Virus record (IMG/VR): IMGVR_UViG_3300045996_002337
Coordinates: 285,661 to 349,660 of that record
Strand: one strand, 5' to 3'
Length of the DNA: 64,000 nt
Numbering within the stretch: position 1 is the first letter of the stretch; the number at the start of each line of letters is the position of its first letter. The notes below the pieces were generated by a model. The model made no database searches, had not been told where the DNA came from, and saw nothing but the letters and a program-made list of their open reading frames with translations. Below, piece by piece: positions 28,501-62,509 of the stretch. A program made the position numbers and the translations under genes.

Positions 28501-28774
28501 AAATTCGAAGACTACCGACACCGGTAATAGTTGCAAGCGCGCCAGCGGCGAAGATGCCAACAACTCCAGCAACTGTGAATTGACTAACAACGAGATTACC
28601 AACCGCGGTAAAGTCGTTTGTTAGCACGTTGCCAGTAAGGACTTGATCTTCAGGTCCAGTTACTGCATCGGCGACCAGGGTAATTTGATCACCAGGAAGG
28701 TGGTTAACGTCCAGTACGGTGATATCACCGAATTGAATTTTACCCTCCCGGTTGTTGAATCTAAATCCGCTCAT
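25583..28774 (-). CDS. Large adhesin-like virion protein with the same architecture as 22210..25518; paralog 3
   Basis: Near-identical N-terminus M(S/P)GFRFNNREGKI, EDQVLTGNVLTND, RNDYSKRQCFN, WHPTDP, GEGRPSADGRFW. Confidence 0.7.
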   Translation of the reverse strand: MSGFRFNNREGKIQFGDITVLDVNHLPGDQITLVADAVTGPEDQVLTGNVLTNDFTAVGNLVVSQFTVAGVVGIFAAGALATITGVGSLRILATGAWTFSPAPNYRGNVPLVTYQATNGDAVNQTTLSITITPVQDAPTASTDSVTASFNSPVTFSPILNDVDPDADVLTLYEVNGEAPVEGNVINVPNGTVTIGANNVLTFTPTPGYSGTFSFPYSITDGVGQASSTITITVLPTLAANGSATTFDSIYEETFALNSTQDVITREVLVKPTVKSTSTSDFKYTDPAFGTKVFMVTDVTDTADTVGYIRNDYSKRQCFNCDSTRFVATAQNSWWHLYDANTFAHIDVPGGVNGRMPTVAADAEIVWHPTDPHKFWFNNRGLNLFFQEIDIRTGEISPLFSFEGRMPPGFQNATRLNMGGEGRPSADGRFWCLQARGSDDSYIGVITYDRETDTILDYVVTNRAIDWAGVSHSGAWAVLGGKGGIAGNTMELEAGRDITQFAGTRAYPIDAISGSVFTVLDQSGQHGDLAVDVNGRDVWVSASYSPFMDMLDGDLYFRDIETGVPYIYEGLSAYAPGGNNAMHFSGCHYGKPGWALISYNAGGTPASWRNGTIMLIELTTESPRAYRLVHHRTDSGEYWATPFATANRDLTRILFGSDFHNSGMPYPQLMIGLPSWAVPTAGTYPPTKLTDPEIGGLVSPGGTLTRTAGTYDSTPVATVTGKWQISTNSGSSWTDITGASSETYVIPGGITNGTMYRWREMAANANGFAAALSNALTVAPISAPVNLVAPSITNGRTDVLSVGNRGSWSANPTPTFTYMWQRDVAASWTDTAFTTRSALLSPAGVWRLRVSASNSEGGPIVAFSNNATISEPVFEPIPTNVVNLTAANDTSIEMIDPNWDGITSNYVIVDNMLRNGTTEGYNTGPIWLTTSGGNNQAFEVTLAAPANIGPGGNHLTIMIHTTGVSTTGYKIEIRDTQLRLYRADNFGEPAVGPLAHNVDLLTTDMTLRMTSYYGRIRAYINGSATPIIDYTDADPITGGYVGLFSYPGADSSRVRISHIAHGVS

Positions 28775-31700: not shown

Positions 31701-31882
31701 GGCACCGTTACATCAAACACCTGCAGGTAATCAGAACCGCCATGGGCAAAGGCTACGGTGGTGGGCGTTGGTGCTACGTTTAGAGAAACATAGCCCGATG
31801 TCGAAGAGGGCAAAAGGAACTGTGGCAGTCCGTTGACGTCTTTTTGATATGATACGAGGCCCTGACGAAAAGTGATTCTCAT
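28799..31882 (-). CDS. Long tail fibre protein with HxH repeats, LxDLxDV repeats and collagen segment
   Basis: HTHAAADITDL, HTHAIDEV, HTHIIADV; multiple LDDLSDV-type repeats; ~17 Gly-X-Y triplets. Confidence 0.8.
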   Translation of the reverse strand: MRITFRQGLVSYQKDVNGLPQFLLPSSTSGYVSLNVAPTPTTVAFAHGGSDYLQVFDVTVPNAWGPLIANKDNYLYWDIDLLTAAVSYGITTVEPVTSSVEPTSPVNDLHWFDLNTNKMRVWRTSSNKWIDRVRVFAGRVENGSAGQIFPRTAGSQVWVNAPSNPGFIMVDSQLRPLRTSVGEFLTTDTPVRIRTTVGTAGVLAVPPNAFIPVRAGENIPAMSLVYFSGEDTVSLASSDPALLFERTPVGVIQEALSTNEIGVLTQSGDITYDQWDWSGHIGKAVYSNSAGQLTTSRPGGLLAYRVGFIKNRNTIVFDVDAETQPQVYSAEAEAVIISGSVPVQTTDSLNGIGERVVTISMPPATATGPGHMTTAQAVTVAAVPGQITTINGLISALQTGKSNVGHTHAAADITDLQGLLDGKLDVDANFDDRYALVNHNHDDRYALINHDHVIPEVTGLQDALNDKFDRDTGLLAFDRIFVSVDQTALSDIATGDSLTQVLAGKSNVGHTHAIDEVINLQSELDGRALTTHTHIIADVTGLQGALDGKLNTGFTLALDELSDVDASAPALGDVLRFNGTSWVGGAGLTVLLDDATPVTTHTLSFTGPVVNELEPGHIEVSVPSSLDDLSDVFAPNPGPGSFLAYGEAGWAATPLPDFYLETLQDVDLTTTAPTNGAALVFNNGTWVPGIVAQTLNDLTDVAVGAPAEGNFLGYTGGQWIARTVPDALTELTDVSIVGPTFGDVLTFNGTSWVAQAAQGGGALDLVDLDDVVFTTTPANGHVLTYDNGLWIAAAPTGGSGGGGATTLDALTDVSVPSPETNSLLLFNGVSWIASTGITGPQGEQGPQGIPGIQGEQGDPGPQGIQGIQGIQGIQGPAGADGEEGPPGPGIAAGGSTGQLLVKQTDSDFATTWINNPVKTGTASTGDATPTTALTFDVPLNRVVSVTAQVNGFELASGAAYSARIFFAAKNVGGTVTIISATSQTDEIKEVASDTWTVTPLEGVDSVVLQVTGELGKTIGWTAVALVA
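29219..29372 (-). repeat. Collagen-like (Gly-X-Y)n repeat
   Basis: GPQGEQGPQGIPGIQGEQGDPGPQGIQGIQGIQGIQGPAGADGEEGPPGPG. Confidence 0.9.
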
Positions 31883-33302: not shown

Positions 33303-33773
33303 TCACTTAGGAATGACACTGTATTTTCCATCTCTTTCAACTCGCATCTCTTTAACTTCATCCACTCCGGTTAAGCCGTTCTTGCGAATCTCGCTGAGGA
33401 GGTCATCTTCCTTCAGGTGCTCTCGACGCAGGTTTCGCTGGATGAATTTACCGTTCTTAACGAGCAGCACCTCCGGTGGCTCATTTAACCAATCGAAGAA
33501 CTTGAACTTCAAGGAGAGACGGTCTACGATAAAGTTCCAGAAGAATAGGGTGCCGACCACTATGATGCCTGATGTGATGCTCTCGTATTGGTCCGTCATT
33601 CCATTTGACGCCGCATCCGCCACCAGAACCAGCAGCAGTACGTCAGCCGCACCAACTTCCCCTAAGGCCCGCTTTAGAATGAAGCGCATGGTTAGCACAA
33701 TGAACCAATACATGCACGTCACTCTAATGAAAAGCTCTAGCGGGTTTTTATCAAGCTCAAAAATCTCCATCAT
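33303..33773 (-). CDS. DUF421 (YetF/YcaP-like) membrane protein
   Basis: KRALGEVGAADVLLLVLVADA, EPPEVLLVKNGKF...NLRREHL..DDLLSEIRKNG...EV....ERDGK.SVIPK. Confidence 0.8.
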   Translation of the reverse strand: MMEIFELDKNPLELFIRVTCMYWFIVLTMRFILKRALGEVGAADVLLLVLVADAASNGMTDQYESITSGIIVVGTLFFWNFIVDRLSLKFKFFDWLNEPPEVLLVKNGKFIQRNLRREHLKEDDLLSEIRKNGLTGVDEVKEMRVERDGKYSVIPK

Positions 33774-34185
33774 CTAGCACCTCAGCGTATTCGTTGCAGA
33801 ACGTAAGGGCGAAGTTGGGCAAAGACAGACCACTTAGGCTTTCCTTACCCTTCACCAACGTAACGTGTGGATTGTATTTAGGAAAGTCATGTGTCCCACC
33901 TGCTTGAATGAACTGATCGTGTCGCCTCTGAAGATCTTCACTTTCAAGAACCAGCACCAAACAATTACCATCAAACGTATCAAACTTTAATGGTGTGGCG
34001 TGATAATCTACGTCCTTCTTTGGCGAAACTGAAATTGAGTTTCGCGAATACAGCAGCGTGACATGAAGGTCGTCGACTAGCTGGATGCCGCTATCCAAGG
34101 CCCACTCTTGGAGTAGAGCCTTGGTAGCAAGATTGGGAACTGCGGCAACGTATGTGCCAGTTCCTAAAATCTCCTTAAGCAGCAA
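33757..34185 (-). CDS. acb1: 2H phosphodiesterase, anti-CBASS Acb1 (T4 gp57B)-like
   Basis: TYVAA, LHVTLLYSR, CLVLVLESEDLQRRH, GGTHDFPKYNPHVTL, EYAEVL parallel the T4 Acb1 sequence as I recall it. Confidence 0.82.
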   Translation of the reverse strand: MLLKEILGTGTYVAAVPNLATKALLQEWALDSGIQLVDDLHVTLLYSRNSISVSPKKDVDYHATPLKFDTFDGNCLVLVLESEDLQRRHDQFIQAGGTHDFPKYNPHVTLVKGKESLSGLSLPNFALTFCNEYAEVLDDGDF

Positions 34186-45145: not shown

Positions 45146-45805
45146 CTAGTTCAACCAATGGAGCAAAACTTGTGACTTTACAACATCGAAGAACATTTTG
45201 ACACGGGCGAAGAAACCAAGAAGAATACCGTACTTCTTCTCTTTGATCGTCTGAGAGAGCCCCTTAAAAACCTTGTACTTGTAGCCACGCCCAACATGGT
45301 AGGCGTAGAAGTTCAAAGCCGCCTCGATCATGAACCTGCTCTTGTAACGATCAGGTATGGAGTTCCAGAAAGATCGCGTTACTGCTCGCTCACCGCCCAA
45401 CAGTGGAATGACACGAAGAAGAAACCGCAGCATGTAGATCGCGCGGTTGCGCATAGCGATCATCATGTCAACCTCGCCGTCAACAACAGGGCCAAGTGTC
45501 TGTGTGATGATCGTGTGGGTTAAACCGTGAACGTCCGCATCACAGAAGAAAATGAACTCTGCTTCGGACTCGCGCACCCCTCGATCCATTGCTTGACCTT
45601 TCCCAAGGTTCAATGGTTGCTGAATGACACGAACTGGAAATTGATTGGCTACTGCGACTGTATCGTCGGTCGAGCCGTCATCTACAACGATGATCTCATC
45701 AAATGGAAATGAACACAAAACACGAAGGACCTCAGCGATTCGAGGTCCTTCGTTGTGGGCGGCAACTACAGCCGCAACCTTACGGTGCGATGATTTTGAA
45801 CCCAT
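45146..45805 (-). CDS. Glycosyltransferase family 2
   Basis: VVAAHNEG, IIVVDDGSTDDT, NLGKGQAM, FFCDAD, LGGERA; likely start MGSKSS. Confidence 0.88.
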   Translation of the reverse strand: MGSKSSHRKVAAVVAAHNEGPRIAEVLRVLCSFPFDEIIVVDDGSTDDTVAVANQFPVRVIQQPLNLGKGQAMDRGVRESEAEFIFFCDADVHGLTHTIITQTLGPVVDGEVDMMIAMRNRAIYMLRFLLRVIPLLGGERAVTRSFWNSIPDRYKSRFMIEAALNFYAYHVGRGYKYKVFKGLSQTIKEKKYGILLGFFARVKMFFDVVKSQVLLHWLN

Positions 45806-47024
45806 CCACTTCAGGCCCCAGCCACGGGGTTTCCTGCTGCATGTAGATCTGGTGGACACGGAAAGCCGGCAGCTCCTTGTCTCCACGCGTCTTCTGACGG
45901 GACTTCGCCGTTTCTTCCGAAACGTAGAACTCGATGGAGACAACCTTGTAACCACGCTGCTTCGCGGCTTCGATCCATGGCGAGCGGCCCTTTCGACCCT
46001 GGTTCATTCGATCCAAGATGATGTCGTCGCTCGAGTCCAACGCCTGCTGGTACCTCATCTTCGCGTACGCGTCGTATTTCGACCCCGGGTTCAAGTGGCA
46101 GAACTTCCATGCGGCGTCGTACTTCTCCGCAGCCGTCTGAACTTCGTACGTCTTTTCCATGAGCAGCCCTGCGTATTCCATGCGGTACGCATCTTCAGAG
46201 ACCACCGTGGTCCGGCTCATCTCACCTTGGTTCTTGATCCACGTGGACTTGCCCGCACCAGACACACCGCACAGCACAAACAGCGTACGCTGCCGTTCAC
46301 GCAACAGACGTTCGCCGGTTTCTTTACTGTAATCGGCAACGCCATTAACGATCTCAAACGGGGGCGCCCGCTTCTTGCTAAACATACGAGCACCAGCGTC
46401 GATTTGCTTGTACGGCAAATGGCGGAACTCGGCGATCCAGTCCTCGACGTTCTTCAGCTTCGTTTCGTGGTCGTCACTGATCCGACCTGCGGCATCCGAG
46501 CGCAGCATGTCCCAGTACGATTCCTCATCATCGCCCATAGTCAAACCAACCGCCTGACGCAGGTTGTTGCGCTTCGTCGGGTTCTTCAGTCCATACGGCA
46601 GGTGATGCTCGATCATGAACTTGATGGTGCGAACGTCGTTCCAGCCGTAGCCTTGCGCAAAGAACATCTCACGCAACTCCGCTTGATCGCACATGAATGA
46701 GAGAAACTCGTTGGCAGAAACAGGCTCATGCCCGGCATAACGCCGGTACATCACGCCAGGCTCGTCCTTCTTCTCGAGCACCTCTTCAGCTTCAGGCTTG
46801 CCAAAGTCATGAAAGAGCAGTGCCATCAGTGCCAGCATCCGCTCCCGCTCAGTGCGATGGGCGGAGAACTTGTTCATGTAGGCCTCAATCGTCATGAGGG
46901 TGTGGACAGCCACATTGGCTTCACGGTGCCAAGGAGAGTTCTCGACGACGGACTCCATCACCTTCCAGTGCGGGGTCTCCATCACCTTGATGAGGAATTC
47001 AGCAAAAAAATCGGTGGTTTTCAT
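45780..47024 (-). CDS. HD phosphohydrolase fused to P-loop polynucleotide-kinase-like (AAA_33) domain
   Basis: SPWHREANVAVHT, LLFHDFGKP, HH, RSDAAGR; LCGVSGAGKSTW, VSEDAYR, ILDRMN; start MKTTDFF. Confidence 0.82.
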   Translation of the reverse strand: MKTTDFFAEFLIKVMETPHWKVMESVVENSPWHREANVAVHTLMTIEAYMNKFSAHRTERERMLALMALLFHDFGKPEAEEVLEKKDEPGVMYRRYAGHEPVSANEFLSFMCDQAELREMFFAQGYGWNDVRTIKFMIEHHLPYGLKNPTKRNNLRQAVGLTMGDDEESYWDMLRSDAAGRISDDHETKLKNVEDWIAEFRHLPYKQIDAGARMFSKKRAPPFEIVNGVADYSKETGERLLRERQRTLFVLCGVSGAGKSTWIKNQGEMSRTTVVSEDAYRMEYAGLLMEKTYEVQTAAEKYDAAWKFCHLNPGSKYDAYAKMRYQQALDSSDDIILDRMNQGRKGRSPWIEAAKQRGYKVVSIEFYVSEETAKSRQKTRGDKELPAFRVHQIYMQQETPWLGPEVDGFKIIAP

Positions 47025-47184
47025 AACCTGATTATAACCCCTTGGTGGCAAGCGTGTTAAATTTTTGCCAAGAAAATGGTAAGTGAGACACCAATGGTAA
47101 CTACAAGTGCCCAAAGAGCGAGCATCAGCCTGAACGCGGGCCAAATAGTTCGCTCACTTTGATATGGTAAGGAGTACGTCTGCC

Positions 47185-51394: not shown

Positions 51395-52927
51395 TCACAT
51401 CATGAACGGTACCGGCTCGTCTCCATACTGGTCACCCTCATTGGGTGCCACGTACTCGTTCACCTGCTTAAACGCGGTGTCGTTGTACTCAGAGAGACGC
51501 TTGAGCAAACGAATGACAATGATGGTTGCCATCACGCAGTCAGAAGTTGCTCCCGGCTTGTGATCATAAGAACCACCTCGAGCCACAAAGTTCTTCAGTT
51601 CGTCGAGTAAGACCGTTGATTTGATCTGAAGGCCACCATTGATTTTTTCAACCAGTGATTTGAGCTGCAAGCAGGCAAGCACCTTTGTTTTACCTGACGT
51701 GAAGACTCCAAGCTTATCTGAAGATGGTTGATCACAATAGAGCTCGGCGTGTTCAGGTTGCTTTTCATCATTTTGGTAGAGTGCTGACATGGCCTCACCA
51801 ATACCGTTTCGCTCGAATGTCCAAAGAACTTCGGCGCGTCCTCTACCAATTGGCGCCGAAAGTTTCTCGAGTATCCACTTTAGCTTTGCGTAGAGCAGGG
51901 GGATGTTGATATCGTTTGATCGCCACTCAGCCACCTGCTCGAGTGATGGAAACTCAAAGACCTCAATGACTGAGAAGTCATTGCCTGAGCCTGTGGCCGG
52001 GTCAACCCCAACCAGATATGTACGGCCTTGACCACCTAGCTCTTCTTCAGGTTTCCAAAACTTAAACCCGAGGTCCTCATAGAGATGATGCGTGGGCGCA
52101 ATTTGGATCAGCTTCATTGAGTTGATCAGCAACGCATCTGATGATAAGAATTCGCACCCGACTTCTTGCCGCGTAGCAAGGGGCCCGATCTGTCCAACCA
52201 TGTCATCCCAGTACTGATCATCCCGCTCGGGGTGTTCTTTCCAGTGCACTTGAAATGGCTTGTACACATTTGTGCCAGACATTGCTCCACGCCACAACGA
52301 GGCAAAGAGATCCGTGTCTCCGTTTGGGGTTGAGGAAATGATAGCAGAACCACCAGTAGACAGGGTAGGCGACAGCGAGTTCCACATCTGCTGCTGAATG
52401 CGTGGGTTAATAAACGCCAACTCGTCAAGATACAGCTTCGAGATGGACAGGCCTCGACCAGTCTTGTCAGTCGTTGCTTCACAAACAACTCGTGATCCGT
52501 TGTCAAGGTCAATCTTGTGCATGTTGTAGTACTTCAAACCTGGCTTGATCCAGCTTGGAAGTTCTTCATACGCGAGCTTAACGCGACCGGCAATTTCAAG
52601 GGCGTGAGAACCGTTCTTCGAGGCGATCAGCACGGTGGCATCGTCGTTGAAGAGCGCGTACCAAAGCAGGTACATGGCAGCCGTGACCGTCTTACCGCAC
52701 TGACGCGGTTGCAGCGTGATCGTAAAACGGTTGGAGTGAATGTGACGAACGAACCGTTCCTGGTAGTCAAACATGTTGAAGGGAACGATACCGCGGGTTG
52801 GGTGGTTCACCTTCACATAGGTTCGAATGAAGTACACTGGATCCCGCTTGCAACGCGCAAGCTCTTGGATCATGAACGGCGTATACTCGTCTGTTGCGTA
52901 CGCCTTCTTAAGCTGCGGGTTCTTCAT
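51395..52927 (-). CDS. terL: Terminase large subunit (T4 gp17-like)
   Basis: PRQCGKT, LYLDELAF, SSTPNG, GCEFL, nuclease YLVGVDPATG, SDCVMA. Confidence 0.95.
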   Translation of the reverse strand: MKNPQLKKAYATDEYTPFMIQELARCKRDPVYFIRTYVKVNHPTRGIVPFNMFDYQERFVRHIHSNRFTITLQPRQCGKTVTAAMYLLWYALFNDDATVLIASKNGSHALEIAGRVKLAYEELPSWIKPGLKYYNMHKIDLDNGSRVVCEATTDKTGRGLSISKLYLDELAFINPRIQQQMWNSLSPTLSTGGSAIISSTPNGDTDLFASLWRGAMSGTNVYKPFQVHWKEHPERDDQYWDDMVGQIGPLATRQEVGCEFLSSDALLINSMKLIQIAPTHHLYEDLGFKFWKPEEELGGQGRTYLVGVDPATGSGNDFSVIEVFEFPSLEQVAEWRSNDINIPLLYAKLKWILEKLSAPIGRGRAEVLWTFERNGIGEAMSALYQNDEKQPEHAELYCDQPSSDKLGVFTSGKTKVLACLQLKSLVEKINGGLQIKSTVLLDELKNFVARGGSYDHKPGATSDCVMATIIVIRLLKRLSEYNDTAFKQVNEYVAPNEGDQYGDEPVPFMM

Positions 52928-53706
52928 AGAAATTCACACTGATATTGTTCGCGCCACGCGTAGTCGCTAATAGACTGCTTGATTAAATCCTTGACTGCTT
53001 GATCCCACTGCACGTCGGCAAAGTCAACTTTAAATGGCGCAAACAGATTGGCGCCTTTGTTAGCTTCTGTCCAAATCTTTGCAAACATGTTATGCTTCCC
53101 ATTGGGCGTTGAGTGGATGGAAAATGCGACACCACATGACGTGAGGACTGGAAGCATCAACATTGCAATATTCTGCTGATCGCTTGGTGACAAAAAAGCA
53201 AAATTATCAAGATGCAACCGTGAAATTGCCATGCCCCTAACGGCCCTCGTGCTGGCAGCCCTAAAGAGAATTCGCGAACTATTTTCAAAGACGATTTCAT
53301 CTTTAGAGGAATAGCGAACCTTAGGCATGAGAAAAGTTGGCAACTTACTTACAGCAAAGTTTGCGATTTCAGAGGCCGAGGCGGCCATTGAATTGGTAAC
53401 TGTACCAAAAACCTCACTTTTACAATCATGGAAGATTGCTTCCCATAGCATAAATGCAATTGCTACGGTCGTCATGCCCACCTGTCTTGGCGCCATTGAA
53501 ACAACCATATCATTGCGCAGCATGTGGCGAATGTAGTCTTCTTGGTATGGGTGCAATGGGAGCGGCATGGCACCCATCTTTGGGTGCAAGTACTGAAAGT
53601 AGTTCTTTATGAAGTAGATTGGATCTTTGGCACAGCGAAAAATTTCTTCAACTTGCTCACGCGACTGGTCAGGGGCGCGGCCCCGCTTGGAGATAATGGT
53701 CTTCAT
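52924..53706 (-). CDS. TerL ATPase-domain paralog with degenerate Walker motifs, no nuclease domain
   Basis: PRQVGMTT (K to M), LHLDNFAF (E to N), HSTPNG, ends QYQCEFL. Confidence 0.85.
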   Translation of the reverse strand: MKTIISKRGRAPDQSREQVEEIFRCAKDPIYFIKNYFQYLHPKMGAMPLPLHPYQEDYIRHMLRNDMVVSMAPRQVGMTTVAIAFMLWEAIFHDCKSEVFGTVTNSMAASASEIANFAVSKLPTFLMPKVRYSSKDEIVFENSSRILFRAASTRAVRGMAISRLHLDNFAFLSPSDQQNIAMLMLPVLTSCGVAFSIHSTPNGKHNMFAKIWTEANKGANLFAPFKVDFADVQWDQAVKDLIKQSISDYAWREQYQCEFL

Positions 53707-54284
53707 TGATTGTCCTCGAAGATGAAGTTCTTAATTGCGCCCACAGTGTGTTCATGTAAGAGAACTTCGAAGTGATTGGCTTTGACTTCTACCTTCTTCC
53801 CGAATTTTAGTGCGCGTTGACTTGATACAGCAACGACGCTGTCATTCGGTTCCGGTGATGTGGGCAGGTGCCCTCCAGTAGAAATGATACTGAGAGTCGG
53901 AGTAGTCAACATGAGATCACAGCATCGTCTAACATGCGGGCCGCGTGGAATGATATCTCCCAGCACGGCTAAGCTGCCCGGGATCCAGCGCAAAGCTGCA
54001 GCGGCCCGTGATCCATTTAGTGGAGATGATATCGTTACAAGCTTTGTGATTCGTTCAGGTTCATCAGCTGCCACTAAGGTCGCGATAACCCCGCCAAGTG
54101 AATGACCGACGAGGATCAATTCGCCAGCTGGTAACTGCGCGCGAACCTGTTCTATCGAAACTGATAGGGGCTGATGCGACAAATAATCCACCATGATCGG
54201 TGAATGCTGGGGCAGCTTGTTGACGATGTATCCAAAGGAACGGTGACTGGAATTCAATCCATGCACGAAGACAATTTGTTTCAT
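53703..54284 (-). CDS. Alpha/beta hydrolase (lipase/esterase)
   Basis: VFVHGL, LVGHSLGG, ISSPLNGS, NDSVV, ANHFEVL; late promoter at 54303-54308. Confidence 0.85.
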   Translation of the reverse strand: MKQIVFVHGLNSSHRSFGYIVNKLPQHSPIMVDYLSHQPLSVSIEQVRAQLPAGELILVGHSLGGVIATLVAADEPERITKLVTISSPLNGSRAAAALRWIPGSLAVLGDIIPRGPHVRRCCDLMLTTPTLSIISTGGHLPTSPEPNDSVVAVSSQRALKFGKKVEVKANHFEVLLHEHTVGAIKNFIFEDNQ

Positions 54285-54311
54285 AGAACCTCTCAGGTTC
54301 TATATTTACAG

Positions 54312-54911
54312 TCACCCGGCGATCAAATCTTCGTAATCCACGTCCTTGCGTACAGGAACGATAATAACGGAGTCACACAGCAGCGCGATTTCGGCGCCAG
54401 AGGAAATGGCTTTTGCAAGGTTGTCGTCATGCCAGGTGATCTCGTCAAGCACCTTCGCGGCCACACCTTCAGCCTCTTCCTCTTTACTAACTCGCATCAA
54501 GTTCTCAATGGTGCGGGCCCAACGCATGGTATCATAGATGGCTTCACCGTTGTGTTCACCCCACACAAATTTGAAGTCACCGACCGGAAAGACGTAGTGA
54601 AGCTGCCCGTAAAGACGGGCAGCGTTTTTATCGCCCGTCGCGAACAGGCCTTCAGATCGAACCTTGACGCCAAACTTCTTTTGAAAGTATGTGTCAAGAA
54701 GCCCATGAACGAACGGAGTAGAATCGCGTGGTTTGCGGTCCTTGCGAACTGTCACCTCACGGGCTCCTTTTACTAGAGAGGCAAAAGGGCCGCCGTAACC
54801 ACGATAGAGTGGTCGATTACCTGCTTGCTCAAGAAAAGGGGCGCATTTCTGACGGATATCCAGCTTTGAATCACCCGTGAGAAAATCCTTAAACGTTCGT
54901 AGACTCGTCAC
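54312..54911 (-). CDS. Putative capsid-internal protein, ADP-ribosyltransferase-like paralog A
   Basis: N-terminal TFKDFL; PLYRG, R..RxS, RSEGLFAT, YG..YVFP, late AEIAL; ART fold is inference. Confidence 0.55.
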   Translation of the reverse strand: MTSLRTFKDFLTGDSKLDIRQKCAPFLEQAGNRPLYRGYGGPFASLVKGAREVTVRKDRKPRDSTPFVHGLLDTYFQKKFGVKVRSEGLFATGDKNAARLYGQLHYVFPVGDFKFVWGEHNGEAIYDTMRWARTIENLMRVSKEEEAEGVAAKVLDEITWHDDNLAKAISSGAEIALLCDSVIIVPVRKDVDYEDLIAG

Positions 54912-55033
54912 TTTTTCTTTGTCCTGTAGCGGGTCTCAAGCACTCCAGCCCATTCAAGGAACTTGTTGCCTAAGTATGTTGTTGCGGCTGCCGCTGCCGC
55001 GCCCGCAATGATCTTTCCAATGAGGCGCAGCAT
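54908..55033 (-). CDS. 41-aa membrane peptide (MLRLIGKIIAGAAAAAATTYLG...)
   Basis: Manual translation; GTGA overlap with next gene. Confidence 0.45.
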   Translation of the reverse strand: MLRLIGKIIAGAAAAAATTYLGNKFLEWAGVLETRYRTKKK

Positions 55034-55036
55034 GGC

Positions 55037-55252
55037 TTACTTCTTTTCGTTTTGTTCTTTGAGGAGGGCGTTAATCCTGCCAATCAGGTCATTAACACGA
55101 ACCTCAGTTGTATTTTTAAGGCCTTGAGCCATTTGTTTAGCATCGTTCACACGAACATCAAGTGGCTTTTGCTCAAGAGCGCGTTTAACATGCTTGGTTG
55201 CAAAGTAACCAGCAACTGCTGCGCCAGCAGCGATCAACATTTTCTTCATCAT
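55037..55252 (-). CDS. Small membrane-anchored protein
   Basis: LIAAGAAVAGYFA anchor; AAGGAG SD. Confidence 0.6.
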   Translation of the reverse strand: MMKKMLIAAGAAVAGYFATKHVKRALEQKPLDVRVNDAKQMAQGLKNTTEVRVNDLIGRINALLKEQNEKK

Positions 55253-55313
55253 CGTTTCTCCTTAAGAGAGGTTAACTTCCGCGTTGTGCAGAATGTGCAT
55301 CTTCGTTATATCT

Positions 55314-56099
55314 TCAAGCCTTGAACATCTTATGGTTGCCATCAGGTGCTTCAACGCGAACATATTTAACGTTCTCGTTGGTATAAAAGATGACTACCCA
55401 TTGTGCATCAGCGGCTTTAATAAGTTCACGCTTTAGCTGCTTGCCCTTCTGGATTACATTTTCTGCTTCGGTAGTACCAACAAGCTTGAGTCGATCGACT
55501 GGCACCTGAAGAAGTTCAGCAGCTTGCCCCATCGCGCGCGTTTCAGTGGCACTCACCCGCTCTGAAAGCAGGTCGATGCCCACGAGCTGCTTTTGAAACT
55601 CAAGTGCAAAAGCTTCATTCCACATCTTGATGATTGGCTTTGGTGGCGACTGTGTGGTCCAAACTGGAATGCGATACGCAGTGGCACCTGGATTTGAAAG
55701 AAGAAGCTTAACGTGCTTGGCTGCAATCTTTTGAGCCAATTTGATTCGTTTGGCACCCTCGCCCTTGATGCCTAATTCCTTCATTCGCTTTGCGATATTT
55801 GTCGTAATCGCAAGATTCTTTAGAGTGGAATAGAGCTGGCCAATCCAGTGATTGCCGTTCATACCCATGCCACCTGGCCTGAAAGGACCAGGACGGTACC
55901 ACCCACTTCCAACTGGGGGTGGCGTGACAGGTGGAATTTCGGGCACGTCAGTTGGAGTTCCACCATCACCAGGCGATGACTCGCCACCATCGCCACCATC
56001 CTCTTCTGAGATCAGTAGGAGCGGCAAAAGGGCCTCGTAAACTTCAAGGTTTTTGCCCTCGAGAAGTGGCTTAGCAGTCAGCAGTTCTTGTACCAGCAT
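55314..56099 (-). CDS. Hypothetical protein, possible internal head protein
   Basis: MLVQELL...LLEG N-terminus; acidic Gly/Pro linker; late promoter at 56123-56128. Confidence 0.6.
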   Translation of the reverse strand: MLVQELLTAKPLLEGKNLEVYEALLPLLLISEEDGGDGGESSPGDGGTPTDVPEIPPVTPPPVGSGWYRPGPFRPGGMGMNGNHWIGQLYSTLKNLAITTNIAKRMKELGIKGEGAKRIKLAQKIAAKHVKLLLSNPGATAYRIPVWTTQSPPKPIIKMWNEAFALEFQKQLVGIDLLSERVSATETRAMGQAAELLQVPVDRLKLVGTTEAENVIQKGKQLKRELIKAADAQWVVIFYTNENVKYVRVEAPDGNHKMFKA

Positions 56100-56129
56100 G
56101 TTGTTATCCGTTGTTAAGGATCTATTTAC

Positions 56130-56864
56130 TTAGGTTTTGTACCAACCCTCAACCTTTTTGTTGAGGGTTTCCATGTCAAAAATTTCTGGCACGAGATACT
56201 TTTCTTTGGTATCTTCAAGGTGCTTTAGCATGCGTTGGCCAACAGGGTTCTGCACAGGAGAGTCATAGAAGTTTGTAACTTCCTTGAAGATCTTCAGCAT
56301 TGCAGCGTCGTCAAGTTCGCCCGGGTTGTTGTTCACTTCCTTGAAGAACTCAAATTTGCCTTTAAAGTACGCCTTATTGGCCCGAGAAACTTCATGCACC
56401 TTGTCAATGAACTCAGGGTTCACTTCACGGCCAATCTCTTCACCGCGCTTCTTTGCGCGGGCCTGGGCTACTTCAAGCTCTGTATCAACAAATACCATGC
56501 CGACGTCATAGCCAAGTGATTCAAGAATGCCTGCCCGGCCGAGGATGTTTGATGCATCGTTGGACGTACCATCGACGAACAGCGGCAGCATGCCGTTCAA
56601 ATAACCAGCGAGCGCGTTCTTTGTTAGGGGGCGGGTGCGGTCGCGGAAGAACGACTTCCATGTTTCGTCATTCGATGGCATGTCGAATTTCTTTGAAAGA
56701 AACTCAGTTGCCTTATCGGTGTTGACAACCTTCGGTGAAATTGGCCCTTGCAGCTTTGAGACAGTGTATGACTTACCTGCGCCCGGAATGCCAACAACGA
56801 AAACCGCTTTCAAAATGCCGCGGTCGTTGATGCTTTCGTCTAGAAATTGTTTGAACGTAATCAT
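56130..56864 (-). CDS. P-loop kinase (zeta-toxin/AAA_33-like) with capsid-targeting-like N-terminus
   Basis: MITFKQFLDES; AVFVVGIPGAGKS, VNTD, LFVDGT, ARAKKR. Confidence 0.75.
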   Translation of the reverse strand: MITFKQFLDESINDRGILKAVFVVGIPGAGKSYTVSKLQGPISPKVVNTDKATEFLSKKFDMPSNDETWKSFFRDRTRPLTKNALAGYLNGMLPLFVDGTSNDASNILGRAGILESLGYDVGMVFVDTELEVAQARAKKRGEEIGREVNPEFIDKVHEVSRANKAYFKGKFEFFKEVNNNPGELDDAAMLKIFKEVTNFYDSPVQNPVGQRMLKHLEDTKEKYLVPEIFDMETLNKKVEGWYKT

Positions 56865-57643
56865 GATAGTGGTTTGATAAATTCGCTGAATTGAATTGCA
56901 GGCACTGAAAGGTATTTACCGCTAAACCAGACCTCGTGCTGCTTTCCATCAAACTTGAAAGAGGATGGTGTCTCGAGCGCGACGCCCATACGATCGGGCT
57001 GAAAGATGTCAGGATATTCAGCGTGAAAATCAAGTAACCAGGCACCGCTAATTTTGCCAATGCGCTTGAATTCGGGCTTCGTTTGGTCAATCTTTCCATC
57101 GACCTCCAGACTGTTGAGAATCTGTTCCCACAGATTCTTCAAGTCTGCTGACAATGTTTGGGGCCCGTCTATGTGGAGAACGTCTTCAGCAATTGTTCGA
57201 ATGTAATAGGAAATGGTGCCGAGATTATTTGTTCGGTGTTCCGCAGCTTTAAATGGTCTAATGAAGTTAAAATCTACCTCTTTGGTAATCGCAAGCTTCG
57301 TCCCATTCACCGGAAAGATGGCATAAGTGTTATCTTCTGTCATTTCTGTGACTTCTGTGTCCATCGTAGTAGAGCAGAAGATTGACCTGTCGCGCTCTGG
57401 AAAATCGTTCCATGCTGGGAACGAGAAGATCCATTTGTGCATGGCGCCATTGCCAGACCGGCTGCGCGGGCGCACGCGCTCTGAAGAGTCGCGAACTCTA
57501 ATTGGTTCGTTCTTGCTAGCCGCCCGCCATAATGGGCGTGTCGGGGTCTTCCAATCGGAGCAGTGCTTCTTAAAGAACTCAAGCGCCTCCTCAGCAGAAA
57601 GGGTCCGATCTTCTTCAAGTAAAAATTCCTTGAATGTGATCAC
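56861..57643 (-). CDS. Putative capsid-internal protein, ADP-ribosyltransferase-like paralog B
   Basis: MITFKEFLLEE; PLWRA, RSRS, RDRSIFCST, YAIFP, HEVW. Confidence 0.55.
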   Translation of the reverse strand: MITFKEFLLEEDRTLSAEEALEFFKKHCSDWKTPTRPLWRAASKNEPIRVRDSSERVRPRSRSGNGAMHKWIFSFPAWNDFPERDRSIFCSTTMDTEVTEMTEDNTYAIFPVNGTKLAITKEVDFNFIRPFKAAEHRTNNLGTISYYIRTIAEDVLHIDGPQTLSADLKNLWEQILNSLEVDGKIDQTKPEFKRIGKISGAWLLDFHAEYPDIFQPDRMGVALETPSSFKFDGKQHEVWFSGKYLSVPAIQFSEFIKPLS

Positions 57644-58359
57644 TTCATTTCACCCATAAGTTGCTTCCACACATCCAGACGAAGCGCGACACACTTTCCT
57701 GAAACCCAGCACTCATGCGGTCCGTTCGGTGGGCGAGCGGTTGTAGTCAAGCGTAGGCGCATGTTTGTCTCAGAGTAGGCTTCTTGCAGTGCCTTTGCGA
57801 CGTCTAGCCCGCCAAATATATGAGAGAACAGCTCGCTATTAGGGTCTTCATAGTCTTGCATTGTTTCTTCAATGCCATTGACCATGTCCTCAAATGAGTA
57901 GTCTGGAATGTCAGCATCGCTAAAAATTTCATTCCATGATGAAAGTGATTGACTCGTGCTTTTGCCAATTTTAATTCGAGTGTGCCAAATATCTTCATCA
58001 GAAGTCACGCCAATCTTGACACCATCAAAAGGGATGATCGCGTAAACCTTACCATAGCTTAGTGCGTAGTCTTGATTGTCTGGGCTAGCCATGATGATGG
58101 ATTTGCTTCGAGCTGGGTAACCCTGTGATGGCAAAAATTCATCCATCACAACAGTGTAATGGTTCGTTGTGTTTGCAGAGCTGCGCCCACCCAACTCGCC
58201 CTGGATAATGTACGCCTCTTCTTCGGTCTTTCGGGAGCCACGCCAGAATGGACGCCTAATGTCCATGTCCTTGCAGTTCGCCTCAATGAGCTCGCGCGCC
58301 TTTTCGACGCTGATGTCTTGACGGTGTTTGGCTTCTCTTAAGAAGTCTTTGAATCTCAT
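57640..58359 (-). CDS. Putative capsid-internal protein, ADP-ribosyltransferase-like paralog C
   Basis: Real start MRFKDFLREA; PFWRG, RSS, RSKSIIMAS, YGKVYAIIP, HECW. Confidence 0.55.
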   Translation of the reverse strand: MRFKDFLREAKHRQDISVEKARELIEANCKDMDIRRPFWRGSRKTEEEAYIIQGELGGRSSANTTNHYTVVMDEFLPSQGYPARSKSIIMASPDNQDYALSYGKVYAIIPFDGVKIGVTSDEDIWHTRIKIGKSTSQSLSSWNEIFSDADIPDYSFEDMVNGIEETMQDYEDPNSELFSHIFGGLDVAKALQEAYSETNMRLRLTTTARPPNGPHECWVSGKCVALRLDVWKQLMGEMK

Positions 58360-58360
58360 A

Positions 58361-58627
58361 TTAGCTCGGCATGCTATAGCCTGCAGGAAGCAGGCTAGGG
58401 TTGTTGTTGGCAGCTGCGATGGCAACCTTCTTAGCGGCTGTTAGGGTTCTAGTAATTCTTCGGCCCTTTGATTTCATCCGCAGATCAAATCCCCCGCCTT
58501 TTGACGTAAGCTTGGAGATAGACCCAACTTGTTGATCGCCCGATTTGACGAACCACTTGAACTGATCATCAGGATCGGGCACAAATGTGAGCTTGGCCTC
58601 GCTCTCAAACAATTCTTGAACTCTCAT
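58361..58627 (-). CDS. Small putative internal head protein
   Basis: MRVQELFESE N-terminus. Confidence 0.55.
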   Translation of the reverse strand: MRVQELFESEAKLTFVPDPDDQFKWFVKSGDQQVGSISKLTSKGGGFDLRMKSKGRRITRTLTAAKKVAIAAANNNPSLLPAGYSMPS

Positions 58628-59097
58628 TTAACTTCCTTGACTTCAGCGTCAATGCTGATCATTCTCATGATTTCATCGCGGCTGGCAACCACGACGTTGT
58701 TTTGCGTTTTATTTGCAAATGGTACAAAGGCAGCGTTGCGCTTGCGTTCGCCTTTGACCTTTGCGCGAGTTGCTGCGGCGCTGAGGGCAATGTTCAGGTA
58801 GTTAGCTGCCACTTCGGCGTTTCTAGCTGCATACCGTGGCTCAATGATCTCGGTGTAGGCGGTCTGCTGGTTGAAGGCGTCGATCGCAGCTTGATAGACG
58901 GTATCAATCTTACCGTCAATCTCCTTGTCTTCCTCATCCTTCTCAGGCGGAGCTTCTTCACCTGACGCCATTTCAGCAAGTTCACCTTCAGTGATCTGCT
59001 CGTACTCATCTTTGTCTTCGTCGAGGCGAGTAGCCGGTGTATTGAACAGCTCGTCAAGAGGATTCGAAAGCATTGGGTTGTTTGATTTGATCGTCAT
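58624..59097 (-). CDS. Probable terminase small subunit (T4 gp16-like)
   Basis: Acidic N-terminus, EPR....EVAANYL helix pair, C-terminal QNNVVVASRDEIMRMI; sits in the packaging block. Confidence 0.5.
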   Translation of the reverse strand: MTIKSNNPMLSNPLDELFNTPATRLDEDKDEYEQITEGELAEMASGEEAPPEKDEEDKEIDGKIDTVYQAAIDAFNQQTAYTEIIEPRYAARNAEVAANYLNIALSAAATRAKVKGERKRNAAFVPFANKTQNNVVVASRDEIMRMISIDAEVKEVK

Positions 59098-59555
59098 TTT
59101 TTCTTACTCCTCTTTGGAACTTGTCGGAACATGCTCTTCTCCGTGATTACGCGGAACACGGCTCCTTGAGATTCTGCGAAGATGCTTGCCGCCTTCCACT
59201 TCGCTTGGTTTACGGCATACGCCATTTTGTCTCGCTCTGAGGAACCTGCCGTTAAAACAGATTCCTTCATAGGTTTAACCTCTACGATTTCCTTCTTGAG
59301 GTTTCCTAGATTGTCACGGTACATGATAATGAAGTCGGGAAAGTACCGTGAAATTTTAGGGCGACCATTTTCATCAATCTTGATTGGGTTGACGTATGGA
59401 ATGGCAAGCTCTTCAGAGCCCCAGCGCAGCACCGCGTTGTTCGTATCTAGCCACTGCATGAACCGTAATTCCCAAGATGAACGGAACATTATCTTGTTGA
59501 CATTGCCAACATACTTCTGGGGGTTCTTGGGAATGAATCTGCCGCCGTGCGCCAT
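59094..59555 (-). CDS. Head completion nuclease (T4 gp4-like, TnsA-type)
   Basis: GRFIPKNPQKYVG, FRSSWELRFM, WGSEELAIPY, RYFPDF, VEVKP, NQAKW. Confidence 0.9.
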   Translation of the reverse strand: MAHGGRFIPKNPQKYVGNVNKIMFRSSWELRFMQWLDTNNAVLRWGSEELAIPYVNPIKIDENGRPKISRYFPDFIIMYRDNLGNLKKEIVEVKPMKESVLTAGSSERDKMAYAVNQAKWKAASIFAESQGAVFRVITEKSMFRQVPKRSKKK

Positions 59556-59556
59556 G

Positions 59557-60960
59557 TTAATCCTCACCCCAAGCCGGTTTGGAATCTGGCACCCATGTTA
59601 CATGTCCCGTAGAACTTGTGACAAGTTGACCTGTTTCCTCTGCTGCTTCTGCGTGTCGGTTATTTACTACCGGCGGGGCTGATGGAAGATCAGCCGATCG
59701 AGTTACGCCAGAAACTGCGGTTGGACCACCTTCAGCGCTGTCAATGACGGTCGCGCTGTACGCGCGCACGGCCCCTTGATTGACCGCTGTCGACATACCA
59801 GAGGCCAGGTCGCGTGCGGCTGCGCCAATCACACCACCTAAAATGTTTGATGCCTGTGAGCCAATAAGCGAAGCAAAGCGGCCCTTACCTGCAACTGATT
59901 GCACGGCGCGGCTAATTGCGGTAGATGAAATTGACTGTGCCGCCCGGCCCACTTGATTTGTGATGATGTTAGCGAAGGGGCTTCCGCCACCAGCTTGCGT
60001 CTGCGCACTTTGATTTACACTCATGTCAACAGGGGCTCCGCCAACTCCAGGGACCGCGATGCTATAGGCTGGTCCATCCATTGTTGTCATTGCACCGACA
60101 TCGACAATTTCCATCCAGTCGTAGTCGAACTGCATGGTCATCAAGGAAACATCAGATGTTTCATGGTTAAGGTCATCAAGATCGAAGGACACAATGCGGG
60201 CATTCAAGAAGTCATAAATGACTTCCTTTGCAGAACCGCCTAATTGTGAACCCGGGTCAACGAACATCTGTTTCACGCGAATGGCGGAGATGACATTACC
60301 AACTTGACTGTCTGTTACCCCACGAATGGCGTTGTCGCCAGCTTTTGGATCATTTGGCGCCGAGAACATCATACCGTTGCCGGTTGAGAGGGTGTTAGGG
60401 TCTGGTGGTCTGGTGGTGCCTTCACGCAGAAGCTGACGTCGGGTAATTGGTGACTGCAGCATCATCAAGGCGCGGAAGAAGTTCAGCACTCGGTTGCCAG
60501 TATCATCCATGAACGTGATTGTCAATTCGCGGTGGCGAATACGCTTTAGCACCTTCGTGCGAAAGTTGTACATGTTGACGTCGTCTTCATACTCGAAGTC
60601 AATCTTGGGACGGTCAACTGACTTGACCATGAATGTAAAGTCGTTGGCCTTGGCACCACCGAAGATCGTAGGGAAGGCAGCCACTGCTTCAGGCGTAAAG
60701 ACAAATTCCACCTTGAATAGAAATTTGAGCTTTGGTCTGTAACTTGTTCCGCCTGCTAAAGCGTGTGCATACGAGCTGGCGTAAAAGGAACCATCACCGC
60801 GATTAAATGGTACTTGACCACCGGGTAGGGGCTGAGGTTGACCTAGAGCAGGTCCTAGTACTCCGCGGCTGAATGTTTCAACCGCAGCACCAAATTTGTC
60901 TGATGCTTCTTTTTCAAGAGCGATCTTTGTGCTGTCGAGGAAGGGTTTTAGGTTTGCCAT
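59557..60960 (-). CDS. Tail-tube-fold baseplate protein (gp48/gp54/gp19-like)
   Basis: PKLKFLFKVEF, VKSVDRPKIDFE, NMYN, ELTITFMDD, FDLDDLNHE; late promoter at 60985-60990. Confidence 0.7.
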   Translation of the reverse strand: MANLKPFLDSTKIALEKEASDKFGAAVETFSRGVLGPALGQPQPLPGGQVPFNRGDGSFYASSYAHALAGGTSYRPKLKFLFKVEFVFTPEAVAAFPTIFGGAKANDFTFMVKSVDRPKIDFEYEDDVNMYNFRTKVLKRIRHRELTITFMDDTGNRVLNFFRALMMLQSPITRRQLLREGTTRPPDPNTLSTGNGMMFSAPNDPKAGDNAIRGVTDSQVGNVISAIRVKQMFVDPGSQLGGSAKEVIYDFLNARIVSFDLDDLNHETSDVSLMTMQFDYDWMEIVDVGAMTTMDGPAYSIAVPGVGGAPVDMSVNQSAQTQAGGGSPFANIITNQVGRAAQSISSTAISRAVQSVAGKGRFASLIGSQASNILGGVIGAAARDLASGMSTAVNQGAVRAYSATVIDSAEGGPTAVSGVTRSADLPSAPPVVNNRHAEAAEETGQLVTSSTGHVTWVPDSKPAWGED

Positions 60961-61007
60961 GAAGGCCCCACAATGCTGATGCTTTATTTATGGGACCTGG
61001 AAATAAG

Positions 61008-61051: not shown

Positions 61052-62509
61052 TCAGTACGCGAAGAGGCGAACTTGATATGCGTTGATGTCAGCATATGTT
61101 GTACCACCCCATGACGAGGTGAACGCGACACGGGTGCCATCACGGCTGATTGAGCCAACTGGTGAGAAGAAGTAGTAATCTTCTTCAGGGAAGGCGGTGC
61201 GGTGCCAAGCGACGTTGAGGATTCGGCCATTCGGCTTCAGTTCAACGAGAGTCAGCTTGCGGTCCATCCAACGGGTGGTTTTTCCTGGTGTTTCGTGCTG
61301 AGCACTGACAAGGATCCAACCTGGCTTGTTGAAGGACTTTCCAGAGAAGTGGAATGCACGACCAGATCCGTCACCGAAGTAGGTTGCCGAGATCTTTGTA
61401 CGAACGCCAGTTTCAATGTTCGTGAAGAACAGATCACCTTCGTTTGCTGCGTAGTCGACTGAAACGTAAACGTCTTGACCTTCTGCGTTAAGCGCGACGT
61501 CACTGTGTTGCGAACCATTCAGAAGCTTACGGCTAGACGTGAAATCACGTGTCCATGCAGCTGTGCCGTTGGTTGCGTCTTCATGGCTGGTAACGCAGTA
61601 CTTGCCTGAAGGCGACATGCTCACGTGGTCAGGACGATTGCCATTGGTGTTTTTGTAACCAAGAATGGTGTTGGTCTGCATGTCCCAAGTGAATACGCCG
61701 AGTGAGTTCCAATTTGCATCGTCTACCATGAAGCACCAGTAACGGCCATCTGCAGATGGCGAACCTTCAGAACGGGTCCATGCAGCGTTTGCAGTTGGCC
61801 AACGTGCTTTAACACGAGCAGCCAAATCACCAACTACGCGTGAAACGCCAGTTGCAACGTTCAATTCATGGACGCGCATGCCGATACCAGTGATTGGTAG
61901 GTAGTAGATGAGATCTGGATCTGTTGGATGCCATTGTGGCTCAGCATCACCAGCGAGACCGGGCAGGCGCTTCTCATATGCGAGGGTGGTCGCATTGTAG
62001 GTGTGCCAGCTGCCGTCAAGGGCTGAGATTAGTTGACGCGTGTTGTTGGCGTTGAAAGCTTGACGACGTGAGTAGTCATTGCGCGCAAAGCCACTTGGTG
62101 GCTCGGAGCGGTCTGTCACACGATAAACCGGGTTACCGAATGTTGGATCTGGTGTCGCGACACCTTTTGCCGGCCGCGCTGTCGTTGGTGACGTAGCAGT
62201 CGAAGGTCCAATTACCCAGCTTCCCGAGGGTGTTGGAGTTGGAGTTGGTGTTGGAGTTGGTGTCGGGGTTGGTGTCGGGGTTGGTGTCACTTCAGGGGCG
62301 ACAACACGGAGTTTGCGGACGCAACCATATTCCGTTGTACCACCAGCTTTAGTGCCGAGACCTTTCGCGCCAGCTTCACAATATGCCAAGGTGGTGTATT
62401 CCTTGAAAAGCGTGCCATCTGGGAGGGTAAGTTCGTAAAATGGTGTTACGGTTTGGGCTTGAGCAGCCGCCGCAACCACCATCGATAGACCGATAATGAT
62501 TTTCTTCAT
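61052..62509 (-). CDS. Secreted beta-propeller protein (signal peptide, small Cys2 domain, PT linker, propeller); paralog 4
   Basis: MKKIIIGLSMVVAAAAQA signal; (PT)n; DPTFGNPVYRVTD, RNDYSRRQAFN, WHPTDP, EGSPSADGRYW; late promoter at 62564-62569. Confidence 0.7.
   Translation of the reverse strand: MKKIIIGLSMVVAAAAQAQTVTPFYELTLPDGTLFKEYTTLAYCEAGAKGLGTKAGGTTEYGCVRKLRVVAPEVTPTPTPTPTPTPTPTPTPTPSGSWVIGPSTATSPTTARPAKGVATPDPTFGNPVYRVTDRSEPPSGFARNDYSRRQAFNANNTRQLISALDGSWHTYNATTLAYEKRLPGLAGDAEPQWHPTDPDLIYYLPITGIGMRVHELNVATGVSRVVGDLAARVKARWPTANAAWTRSEGSPSADGRYWCFMVDDANWNSLGVFTWDMQTNTILGYKNTNGNRPDHVSMSPSGKYCVTSHEDATNGTAAWTRDFTSSRKLLNGSQHSDVALNAEGQDVYVSVDYAANEGDLFFTNIETGVRTKISATYFGDGSGRAFHFSGKSFNKPGWILVSAQHETPGKTTRWMDRKLTLVELKPNGRILNVAWHRTAFPEEDYYFFSPVGSISRDGTRVAFTSSWGGTTYADINAYQVRLFAY
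62229..62290 (-). repeat. (Pro-Thr)n linker, 6-bp tandem units
   Basis: About 10 PT units. Confidence 0.9.

Follow-up and report, generated by a model that had tools for sequence, protein, structure and literature searches.

Genes with T4-type capsid-targeting leaders form a probable head-cargo cassette next to the terminase gene of an uncultured jumbo phage

We analyzed a 64,000-nt stretch of an uncultured phage contig (IMG/VR record IMGVR_UViG_3300045996_002337, positions 285,661 to 349,660; hereafter the window), in which a cassette of genes on the minus strand at 54312-58627 encodes proteins whose N-termini resemble the capsid-targeting sequence (CTS) of phage T4, the head-loading tag described by Mullaney and Black (1996) and reviewed in PMC3012670 and PMC5694885. 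Since otherwise unrelated proteins of the cassette share this tag, they are probably pre-packed virion cargo. On balance, we think it likely that the cassette encodes head cargo that bears leaders of 5-14 residues of the T4 CTS class and that would be docked, trimmed of its leader and ejected together with the DNA.

All six leader N-termini quoted in the first-pass annotation are present on the minus strand, provided that the start codons are corrected: the genes for the 260-aa and 199-aa proteins start with GTG, and the 239-aa gene starts with the ATG at 58359, not with the upstream TTG at 58425. Four leaders are of the internal protein (IP) type, with F-K-[EDQ]-F-L as the core. These are MRFKDFLRE followed by A in the 239-aa protein (57640-58359), MITFKEFLLE followed by E in its 260-aa paralogue (56861-57643), MITFKQFLDE followed by S in a 244-aa P-loop kinase (56130-56864), and MTSLRTFKDFLTG, with the core TFKDFL, in a 199-aa short member of the same family as the first two (54312-54911). 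The other two are of the Alt type (M-x-V-Q-E-L), namely MRVQELFESE in a basic 88-aa protein (58361-58627) and MLVQELL in a 261-aa protein (N-terminus MLVQELLTAKPLLEG; 55314-56099). The latter pair had been described as a weaker variant of the common leader; both are there as quoted, and what they resemble is the leader of T4 Alt, not a degraded IP leader. The claimed likeness to T4 holds in the T4 genome record (NC_000866), in which IPI starts with MKTFKEF, IPII and IPIII with MKTYQEFIAEA, and Alt with MELITELFDED.

The leader motif is specific to the cassette. In the 20,772 residues of the 89 open reading frames (ORFs) called in the window, F[KQ][EDQ]F[LI] occurs four times, exclusively at the N-termini of cassette genes (residues 3-7) and never internally, against 0.002 N-terminal occurrences expected from composition, so this enrichment is far from chance. 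In five of the six cassette proteins the leader ends with [LIV]-x-E, the motif of the T4 prohead protease, with predicted sites at LRE-9 in the 239-aa protein, LLE-10 in the 260-aa protein, LDE-10 in the kinase, VQE-5 or LFE-8 in the 88-aa protein and VQE-5 or LLE-14 in the 261-aa protein. VQE-5 is thus common to both Alt-type proteins, and the processing site of T4 Alt is ITE-6 (PMC5694885).

The leaders are conserved well beyond the window. One large unannotated family includes the 239-, 260- and 199-aa proteins as paralogues. An IP- or Alt-type leader was found on 91% of its 144 best representatives (of 3,999 clusters), the mature parts of which are only approximately 25-40% identical. The family consensus is M-[KRTNS]-F-K-[EQD]-F-L-x-E-[AS], with MKTFKQFIAEE in one relative, and Glu occupies the cleavage-motif position in 97 of 105 family leaders. 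Among kinase orthologues, 117 of 120 (97%) carry the leader in the form M-[IKT]-T-F-K-Q-[FY]-[LIMV]-x-E-[SG]-I-N-D. The start MK[LIV]xEL was found in 35 of 36 homologues of the 261-aa protein (97%), and PLLEG is kept in most of them. The control values were 4% for other window ORFs and 7% for reversed sequences. In one orthologue of the 261-aa protein, P0187, an IP-type leader replaces the Alt-type one; hence, both types are interchangeable on one cargo. The codons of the leader vary synonymously (the first Phe is encoded by TTC and TTT in the proportion 13/13, and Leu by six different codons), which indicates selection on the leader peptide, not on the DNA. In the two AlphaFold2 models the leader lies outside the confident fold, with a predicted local confidence score (pLDDT) <50 for residues 1-7 of the 239-aa protein and 1-15 of the 199-aa protein. 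The sole other window ORF with an Alt-type-like start (MLLKEIL, TTG codon; 33757-34185, minus strand) lies beside glutaredoxin and ribonucleotide reductase genes and is probably a chance match.

The strongest support, though indirect, came from the related jumbo phage Atu_ph07, which provided a proxy for the content of virions. Every ORF start in its whole 490-kb genome was scanned for the variant of the leader used by this phage, and eight anchor genes served to verify the gp numbering. The published table of purified virions holds 140 entries for 714 coding sequences (PMC6102473 supplement), and no function is assigned to 102 of the 131 virion proteins. The leader was found on 19 annotated genes (gp43, gp53-63, gp381, gp407, gp408, gp482, gp487, gp561 and gp672); the gp53-63 array comprises homologues of the large family, all starting with M-[RK]-W-x-Q-L-x-E or a close variant. 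All 19 products are listed in the table obtained by electrospray ionization tandem mass spectrometry, each with at least two unique peptides (one-sided Fisher test, p = 1.3e-14). After gene clusters were collapsed and one ambiguous internal-start match was counted as a miss, the association of the leader with virion presence was still significant (p = 8e-6). Once the leader was trimmed off, BLAST separated the 19 proteins into at least seven groups without mutual similarity, and their genes are spread across 430 kb. The paralogues of 29-31 kDa peak in one gel band with a coverage of 12-46%, which argues that they persist in virions and are not digested in the way scaffold is. Atu_ph07 gp204 is a protease of the T4 gp21 type (it matches T6 gp21 with E 2e-10), and LLE-G, the same site as in the PLLEG of the 261-aa family, lies near the N-termini of the Atu_ph07 major capsid protein (MCP), gp205 and gp214. 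In a text search of PMC6102473, neither paralogues nor internal proteins came up, and gp53-63 are listed there as hypothetical. The paper on the Ralstonia jumbo phage RsoM2USA identified ten abundant bands and is uninformative for the cassette. Two virion proteins of Atu_ph07 deserve a mention. The lone 170-aa gp381 (L018, 40373-40885) has the leader MKWQDLSEG followed by VYHGS, and gp483 (L020, 504-1388) starts with MLLSELFDT, close to MELITELFDE of T4 Alt.

The first-pass annotation had described the cargo as enzymatic, with three proteins resembling ADP-ribosyltransferases (ARTs) and a kinase. The kinase was borne out. The 244-aa protein matches Pfam Zeta_toxin with 46.9 bits (cut-off 22.3; 2.9e-12) and AAA_33 with 37.1 bits (cut-off 27; 4.8e-9), which confirms it, at the level of protein families, as a P-loop kinase of the Zeta_toxin/AAA_33 type (PNK/Zeta-like). 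Matches to PSTK, PNK and thymidylate-kinase models were weak, and neither the single sequence nor a profile retrieved any PDB sequence. The kinase orthologues are 56-75% identical among themselves, and 20 of them show little or no variation in the Walker A motif G-x-P-G-x-G-K-S and in D-x-T-S-N. Kinases encoded by separate genes bear their own leader, whereas gp53 of Atu_ph07 is a fusion in which a family domain precedes the now internal kinase and a single leader serves both. Homologues approximately 31-33% identical to the cassette kinase occur in marine T4-like phages of 141-147 kb, Pelagibacter phage HTVC008M and Methylophilales phage Melnitz. In HTVC008M (L015, 106562-109011) the kinase starts with MIPFILKEG and the product of the next gene (596 aa, with a nucleotidyltransferase-like motif) with MKTLKELL, so CTS-like tags may extend to marine T4-like phages. 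The window encodes a second P-loop kinase (45780-47144, minus strand; 454 aa), devoid of a CTS-like leader, with weak HDIG and Pnkp-like matches; it matches phrog_6931 and phrog_2071, as does the cassette kinase, and is possibly an RNA-repair kinase/phosphatase.

Two more cargo proteins, like the kinase, are unrelated to the large family and yet bear leaders. The 261-aa protein starts with MLVQELL; next come PLLE, with G as the following residue, an acidic linker rich in Gly and Pro, and finally a C-terminal domain. For this domain the Atlas language-model search gave scores of 0.61-0.66, below noise, and the named matches, mostly toxin nuclease domains, were unusable. The 88-aa protein (isoelectric point 10.0) is small and basic like the T4 IPs and is a candidate small internal protein.

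The three proteins called ART-like turned out to be the members of the large family. The 260-aa protein matches the 239-aa one by BLASTP with E 2e-10, and for the 199-aa protein jackhmmer recovers the whole family and hhalign against the family profile, A1, gives E 1.5e-4 (orthologues of the 199-aa protein were aligned separately as A2). The 239-aa protein has 33 close homologues, and a profile search retrieved 3,999 cluster representatives (50% identity) at E<=1e-3. The Atu_ph07 homologues were retrieved with E down to 5e-15 by Foldseek against the viral models of BFVD and with 1e-11 to 1e-50 by the A1 profile; otherwise, the BFVD search returned uncharacterised jumbo-phage proteins only. Both AlphaFold2 models are confident (pLDDT 92.5 for the 239-aa and 82.8 for the 199-aa protein). 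Alignment of the 239-aa family shows no variation at R40, R84 and E216 and hardly any at S87. R40 (followed by G), R84-S-x-S87 and E216 occupy beta-strand positions in an order that fits the R-S-E of ARTs and is nonspecific without the fold; R37-G, R85-S86 and E174 of the short form likewise lie on strands. The ART assignment was nevertheless not confirmed by any route. No ART family was retrieved from Pfam, under strict settings or even at E<=5 (29 + 10 family members), or from NCBIfam, and a profile search of PDB sequences with the family gave no match at all. Foldseek of the two confident models against PDB gave best E values of 0.15 and 0.096 with template modelling (TM) scores <0.3, and the sole ART in the list, 7dn9_A, ranked 20th with E 0.57. 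One lead below the threshold came from Atlas, in which the nearest named family is DUF2441 (cosine 0.83-0.84), a member of the ART clan (PMC7955679); the alignment of a proxy cluster with DUF2441 gave TM scores of 0.43/0.55 and is a weak lead. We regard the family as probably enzymatic, with a confidently modelled fold that is unmatched in PDB.

The cassette lies in a late head-gene locus. The operon is headed by a gene for a tail-tube-like protein (59557-60960, minus strand like all genes described here), and the upstream boundary is a gp4-like head completion gene (59094-59567; Pfam Tn7_TnsA-like_N, 4.1e-20). Its product is 40% identical (E 1e-37) to gp125 of Atu_ph07, which carries the annotation head completion protein, and the position of the gene is kept in the related loci L005, L006, L008, L010 and L016. 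An acidic 157-aa protein with conserved NPLDELFNT (58624-59097) comes next, followed by the genes for the 88-aa, 239-aa, 260-aa (matching phrog_12810 and phrog_11975), kinase and 261-aa proteins. Two small proteins have no leader. One, of 71 aa, has a hydrophobic N-terminus (55037-55252) and counterparts in L005 and L010; the other is a hydrophobic protein of 41 aa (54908-55033) and a conserved neighbour, in the place of which L005 has a near-identical ORF of 42 aa and L008 one of 41 aa with a different sequence. Past the short family member lie a gene for a 193-aa alpha/beta hydrolase without a leader (53703-54284; Pfam Abhydrolase_1 and Lipase_3), also found just upstream of TerL in L005 and L006, then a gene for a 260-aa paralogue of the TerL ATPase domain (52924-53706) directly upstream of the full TerL gene (51395-52927), which forms the downstream boundary. 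The cassette had been placed between TerS-like/gp4 genes and terL. The gp4 and TerL flanks proved right; the TerS label has in its favour position, size and acidity, and no family support, as the protein encoded at 58624-59097 gave no Pfam or PHROG match. Its only homologues in cultured phages are unnamed ORFs near TerL in RsoM2USA and Xanthomonas phage XacN1, and it is kept inside the cassette in all syntenic loci. In the TerL-like protein the Walker A lysine is replaced (PRQVGMTT versus PRQCGKTV in TerL), so this product is probably a catalytically dead terminase-like subunit; such an extra gene is also present in L006 (15070-15852) and L010 (9779-10555).

The same gene order (gp4, acidic protein, paralogues, kinase, Alt-type protein, small proteins, the short paralogue in some cases, hydrolase, TerL) is also seen in RsoM2USA and in four metagenomic contigs of jumbo phages. 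Syntenic loci hold between 2 and 6 paralogues each, and in one contig a trio of two paralogues and the kinase is relocated elsewhere. Stop and start codons overlap as ATGA or GTGA at four cassette junctions, which implies tight coupling. Two ORFs inside the cassette of L010 (5329-5931 and 6697-7491) have faint Pfam matches to NUMOD3, of the homing-endonuclease type, suggesting that the locus is a recombination hotspot.

We take TAAATA to be the core element of T4 late promoters (TATAAATA). It has 21 copies on the coding strand of the window against one on the opposite strand, and most lie 24-73 nt before a start codon. Both sites cited in the first-pass annotation are real (56128-56123 and 59666-59661), and four sites are located in or just before the cassette. 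TAAATA is found at 60985-60990, 30 nt upstream of the tube-like gene; at 56913-56918, inside the 260-aa gene and 54 nt upstream of the kinase start; at 56123-56128, 29 nt upstream of the 261-aa gene; and at 54303-54308, 24 nt upstream of the hydrolase gene, which thus has its own site. Others are spread across the window (e.g., 51383, 38530 and 12676). At the level of sequence, this strand-specific distribution points to late transcription of the cassette together with the head genes. Elsewhere in the window, three tandem giant ORFs on the minus strand (22210-25518, 25583-28774 and 28799-31882) encode proteins of 1,027-1,102 aa, two of which share the N-terminus M-[PS]-GFRFNNREGKI. TAAATA precedes each of them (25551 and 31913; 22206 is upstream of the next gene), and they are likely paralogous fibre or baseplate proteins with a common attachment module. 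A further late-locus gene (61052-62509, minus strand) encodes a protein that begins like a signal peptide and continues through a (TP)n linker into a C-terminal region; it is apparently exported, which is unusual among tail and head genes. Its counterpart, by position only, is a 355-aa protein of L005 (2141-3208) encoded between sheath and tube-like genes, with Pfam matches to beta-propellers (PD40/WD40).

The window is coding on the minus strand almost throughout (69 of the 89 called ORFs), and the contig that carries its proteins has 349,660 bp. The window TerL is 46.6% identical to that of RsoM2USA, 42% to that of XacN1 and 37-39% to those of Atu_ph07 and PA5oct. From contig size and TerL relatives, the source is judged to be an uncultured jumbo myovirus of approximately 350 kb, a distant T4 relative in the T4-related jumbo group without its own RNA polymerase. 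This group has been termed 'group 2.2', and its Rak2/Atu_ph07/XacN1 members have no virion RNA polymerase (PMC7824862). A near-identity DNA search with the cluster found no relative among 50,697 phage records, and public sequencing runs gave only two weak DNA matches (share 0.06-0.07) and no RNA run.

The alternative that survives best, which we still hold to be unlikely, is that the leaders direct entry into the virion and the proteins are structural or assembly parts (core, scaffold-like or decoration proteins) instead of enzymes delivered to the host. The T4 core proteins gp67 and gp68 likewise assemble on the core, the Atu_ph07 data concern virion presence only, and no catalytic fold was recognised for the main cargo family. 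Yet the Walker A motif of the kinase is intact and its catalytic-type residues are invariant across 120 orthologues, and the strict conservation of Arg and Glu in the family, with Ser close to it, is what active sites typically show. From phage to phage the genes are hypervariable in copy number and sequence, as at the IP loci of T-even phages and unlike structural genes, and the Atu_ph07 proteins remain at approximately full size, not degraded like scaffold.

It is far less probable that the common N-terminus was merely inherited by duplication or spread by recombination between neighbours and has no targeting role. Three of the six cassette proteins are paralogues indeed, and adjacent, partly overlapping genes favour gene conversion. 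However, the kinase, 261-aa and 88-aa proteins bear the leader with no relationship to the family. The leader is retained in 91-97% of diverged homologues while the remainder of the family falls to 25-40% identity, conservation acts at the level of the peptide, and in Atu_ph07 unrelated, dispersed genes up to 400 kb apart carry it, all of them coding for virion proteins. Another function of the N-terminus (translation-initiation enhancer, membrane or secretion signal, degradation tag) is very improbable too: the motif is short, strictly N-terminal and encoded by A/T-rich codons, but its synonymous codons vary freely, the peptide is amphipathic and acidic, unlike a signal peptide, it terminates in a prohead-protease motif, and it predicts virion presence in Atu_ph07.

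Several observations weigh against the view of the cassette as ejected head cargo. The 199-aa protein, despite its F-K-D-F-L core, has no [LIV]-x-E in its first 40 residues, and the motif is also missing in two of its three orthologues; the protein may be targeted and left uncleaved, or cut at another site. Leader identity was 0.58 within genomes and 0.55 between genomes of close relatives, so co-adaptation of the leader to its receptor was not shown. The only lineages in which leaders did co-vary within a genome were two divergent ones, Atu_ph07 and L009; among close relatives this had no support. The virion proteomics stem from Atu_ph07, not from the window phage or a close relative, the Atu_ph07 leader (M-R-W-x-Q-L-x-E) differs in sequence from those of the window, and N-terminal peptides were not reported in that work (PMC6102473). 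Moreover, presence in virions proves neither a location in the head interior nor ejection. Finally, portal, prohead protease and MCP genes were absent among the ORFs of the 64-kb window, the rest of the contig not having been searched; the genes for the protease, the scaffold and the MCP are located beyond its limits, and their presence in the genome is presumed from relatives.

At the level of sequence, the cassette has the features of T4 CTS cargo in all respects examined except the cleavage site of the 199-aa protein. If its products are head cargo, they would be transcribed late from the TAAATA promoters, along with the head-completion and packaging genes. Through its leader, each protein would then dock on the scaffolding core while the prohead assembles, and a gp21-type prohead protease would cut the leader off after the Glu of [LIV]-x-E. 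The mature proteins would stay in the DNA-filled head, exit with the DNA at infection and act early, possibly in host takeover or anti-defence. More tentatively, the CTS could be an ancient address label, readable from sequence and conserved across the wider T4 superfamily including jumbo phages of 350-490 kb, and the family of approximately 4,000 clusters a new class of head-delivered enzymes, which, adjacent or fused to the PNK/Zeta-like kinase, may share a substrate with it at the earliest stage of infection; were this so, sets of head-packed proteins would be predictable from genomes and metagenomes alone.

What the cassette adds is that the T4 address label appears to be conserved and predictive in jumbo phages and to mark a very large uncharacterised family as head cargo. 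Most virion proteins of jumbo phages are 'hypothetical', and a leader predicting virion loading would turn sequence alone into a list of candidate ejected proteins. The rule, correct for 19 of 19 genes in the one available proteome, would be applicable to uncultured phages and flags specific genes for testing in host takeover or counter-defence. It also suggests that protein packaging by the T4 CTS, already used for engineering, could be transferred to far larger capsids. Given its size, its well-folded models and the lack of any PDB match, the cargo family is a sensible choice for structural and functional work.

Our literature search found the CTS described for T4 and T-even phages only, with long-propeptide analogues in phiKZ and SPN3US. 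The cassette is like T4 IPI-III and Alt in its short leaders with nearly the same residues (T4 MKTFKEF, MKTYQEFIAE cut before A, and Alt MELITE cut before LFDE), in the gp21 motif [LI]-x-E at the leader end, in unrelated hypervariable cargo that includes small basic proteins and enzymes, in late genes, and in a phage lineage with homologues of the gp21-type protease, gp4, gp17 and gp23. It differs in belonging to a jumbo phage of approximately 350 kb with a TerL only distantly related to that of T4, and in its position, which is between gp4/TerS-like genes and TerL, whereas T4 has its genes at the ip and alt loci. A PNK/Zeta-like kinase and a family of approximately 4,000 clusters make up different cargo, with no homologue of IPI-III, and, unlike in T4 Alt, no ART domain was detected in the cassette. 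The ejection (inner-body) proteins of phiKZ and SPN3US also represent the loading of many head proteins by jumbo phages via N-terminal propeptides, which are cut after Glu by a T4-related gp21-like protease (PMC5694885). Those propeptides are mostly >100 residues long with the motif S/A-x-E, whereas the window leaders have 5-14 residues and are T4-like. As in the predicted head-packaged ARTs and MuF polyvalent effectors (Iyer, Burroughs, Anantharaman and Aravind; PMC9503650), enzymes encoded beside the terminase, portal or head genes of myoviruses would be packed and injected. Unlike the MuF effectors, delivery in the window phage would depend on the short CTS (no fusion to a MuF, portal or other carrier domain was found in any cassette protein with Pfam or PHROG), and neither Pfam nor Foldseek recognises the proteins as ARTs. 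The nearest parallel is offered by gp53-gp63 of Atu_ph07 (Attai et al. 2018, PMC6102473). That array differs in its leader, in its location away from TerL and in the fusion of the kinase in gp53, but it shares with the window cassette homologous paralogues, conserved leaders and an associated kinase domain, and its products were detected in purified virions.

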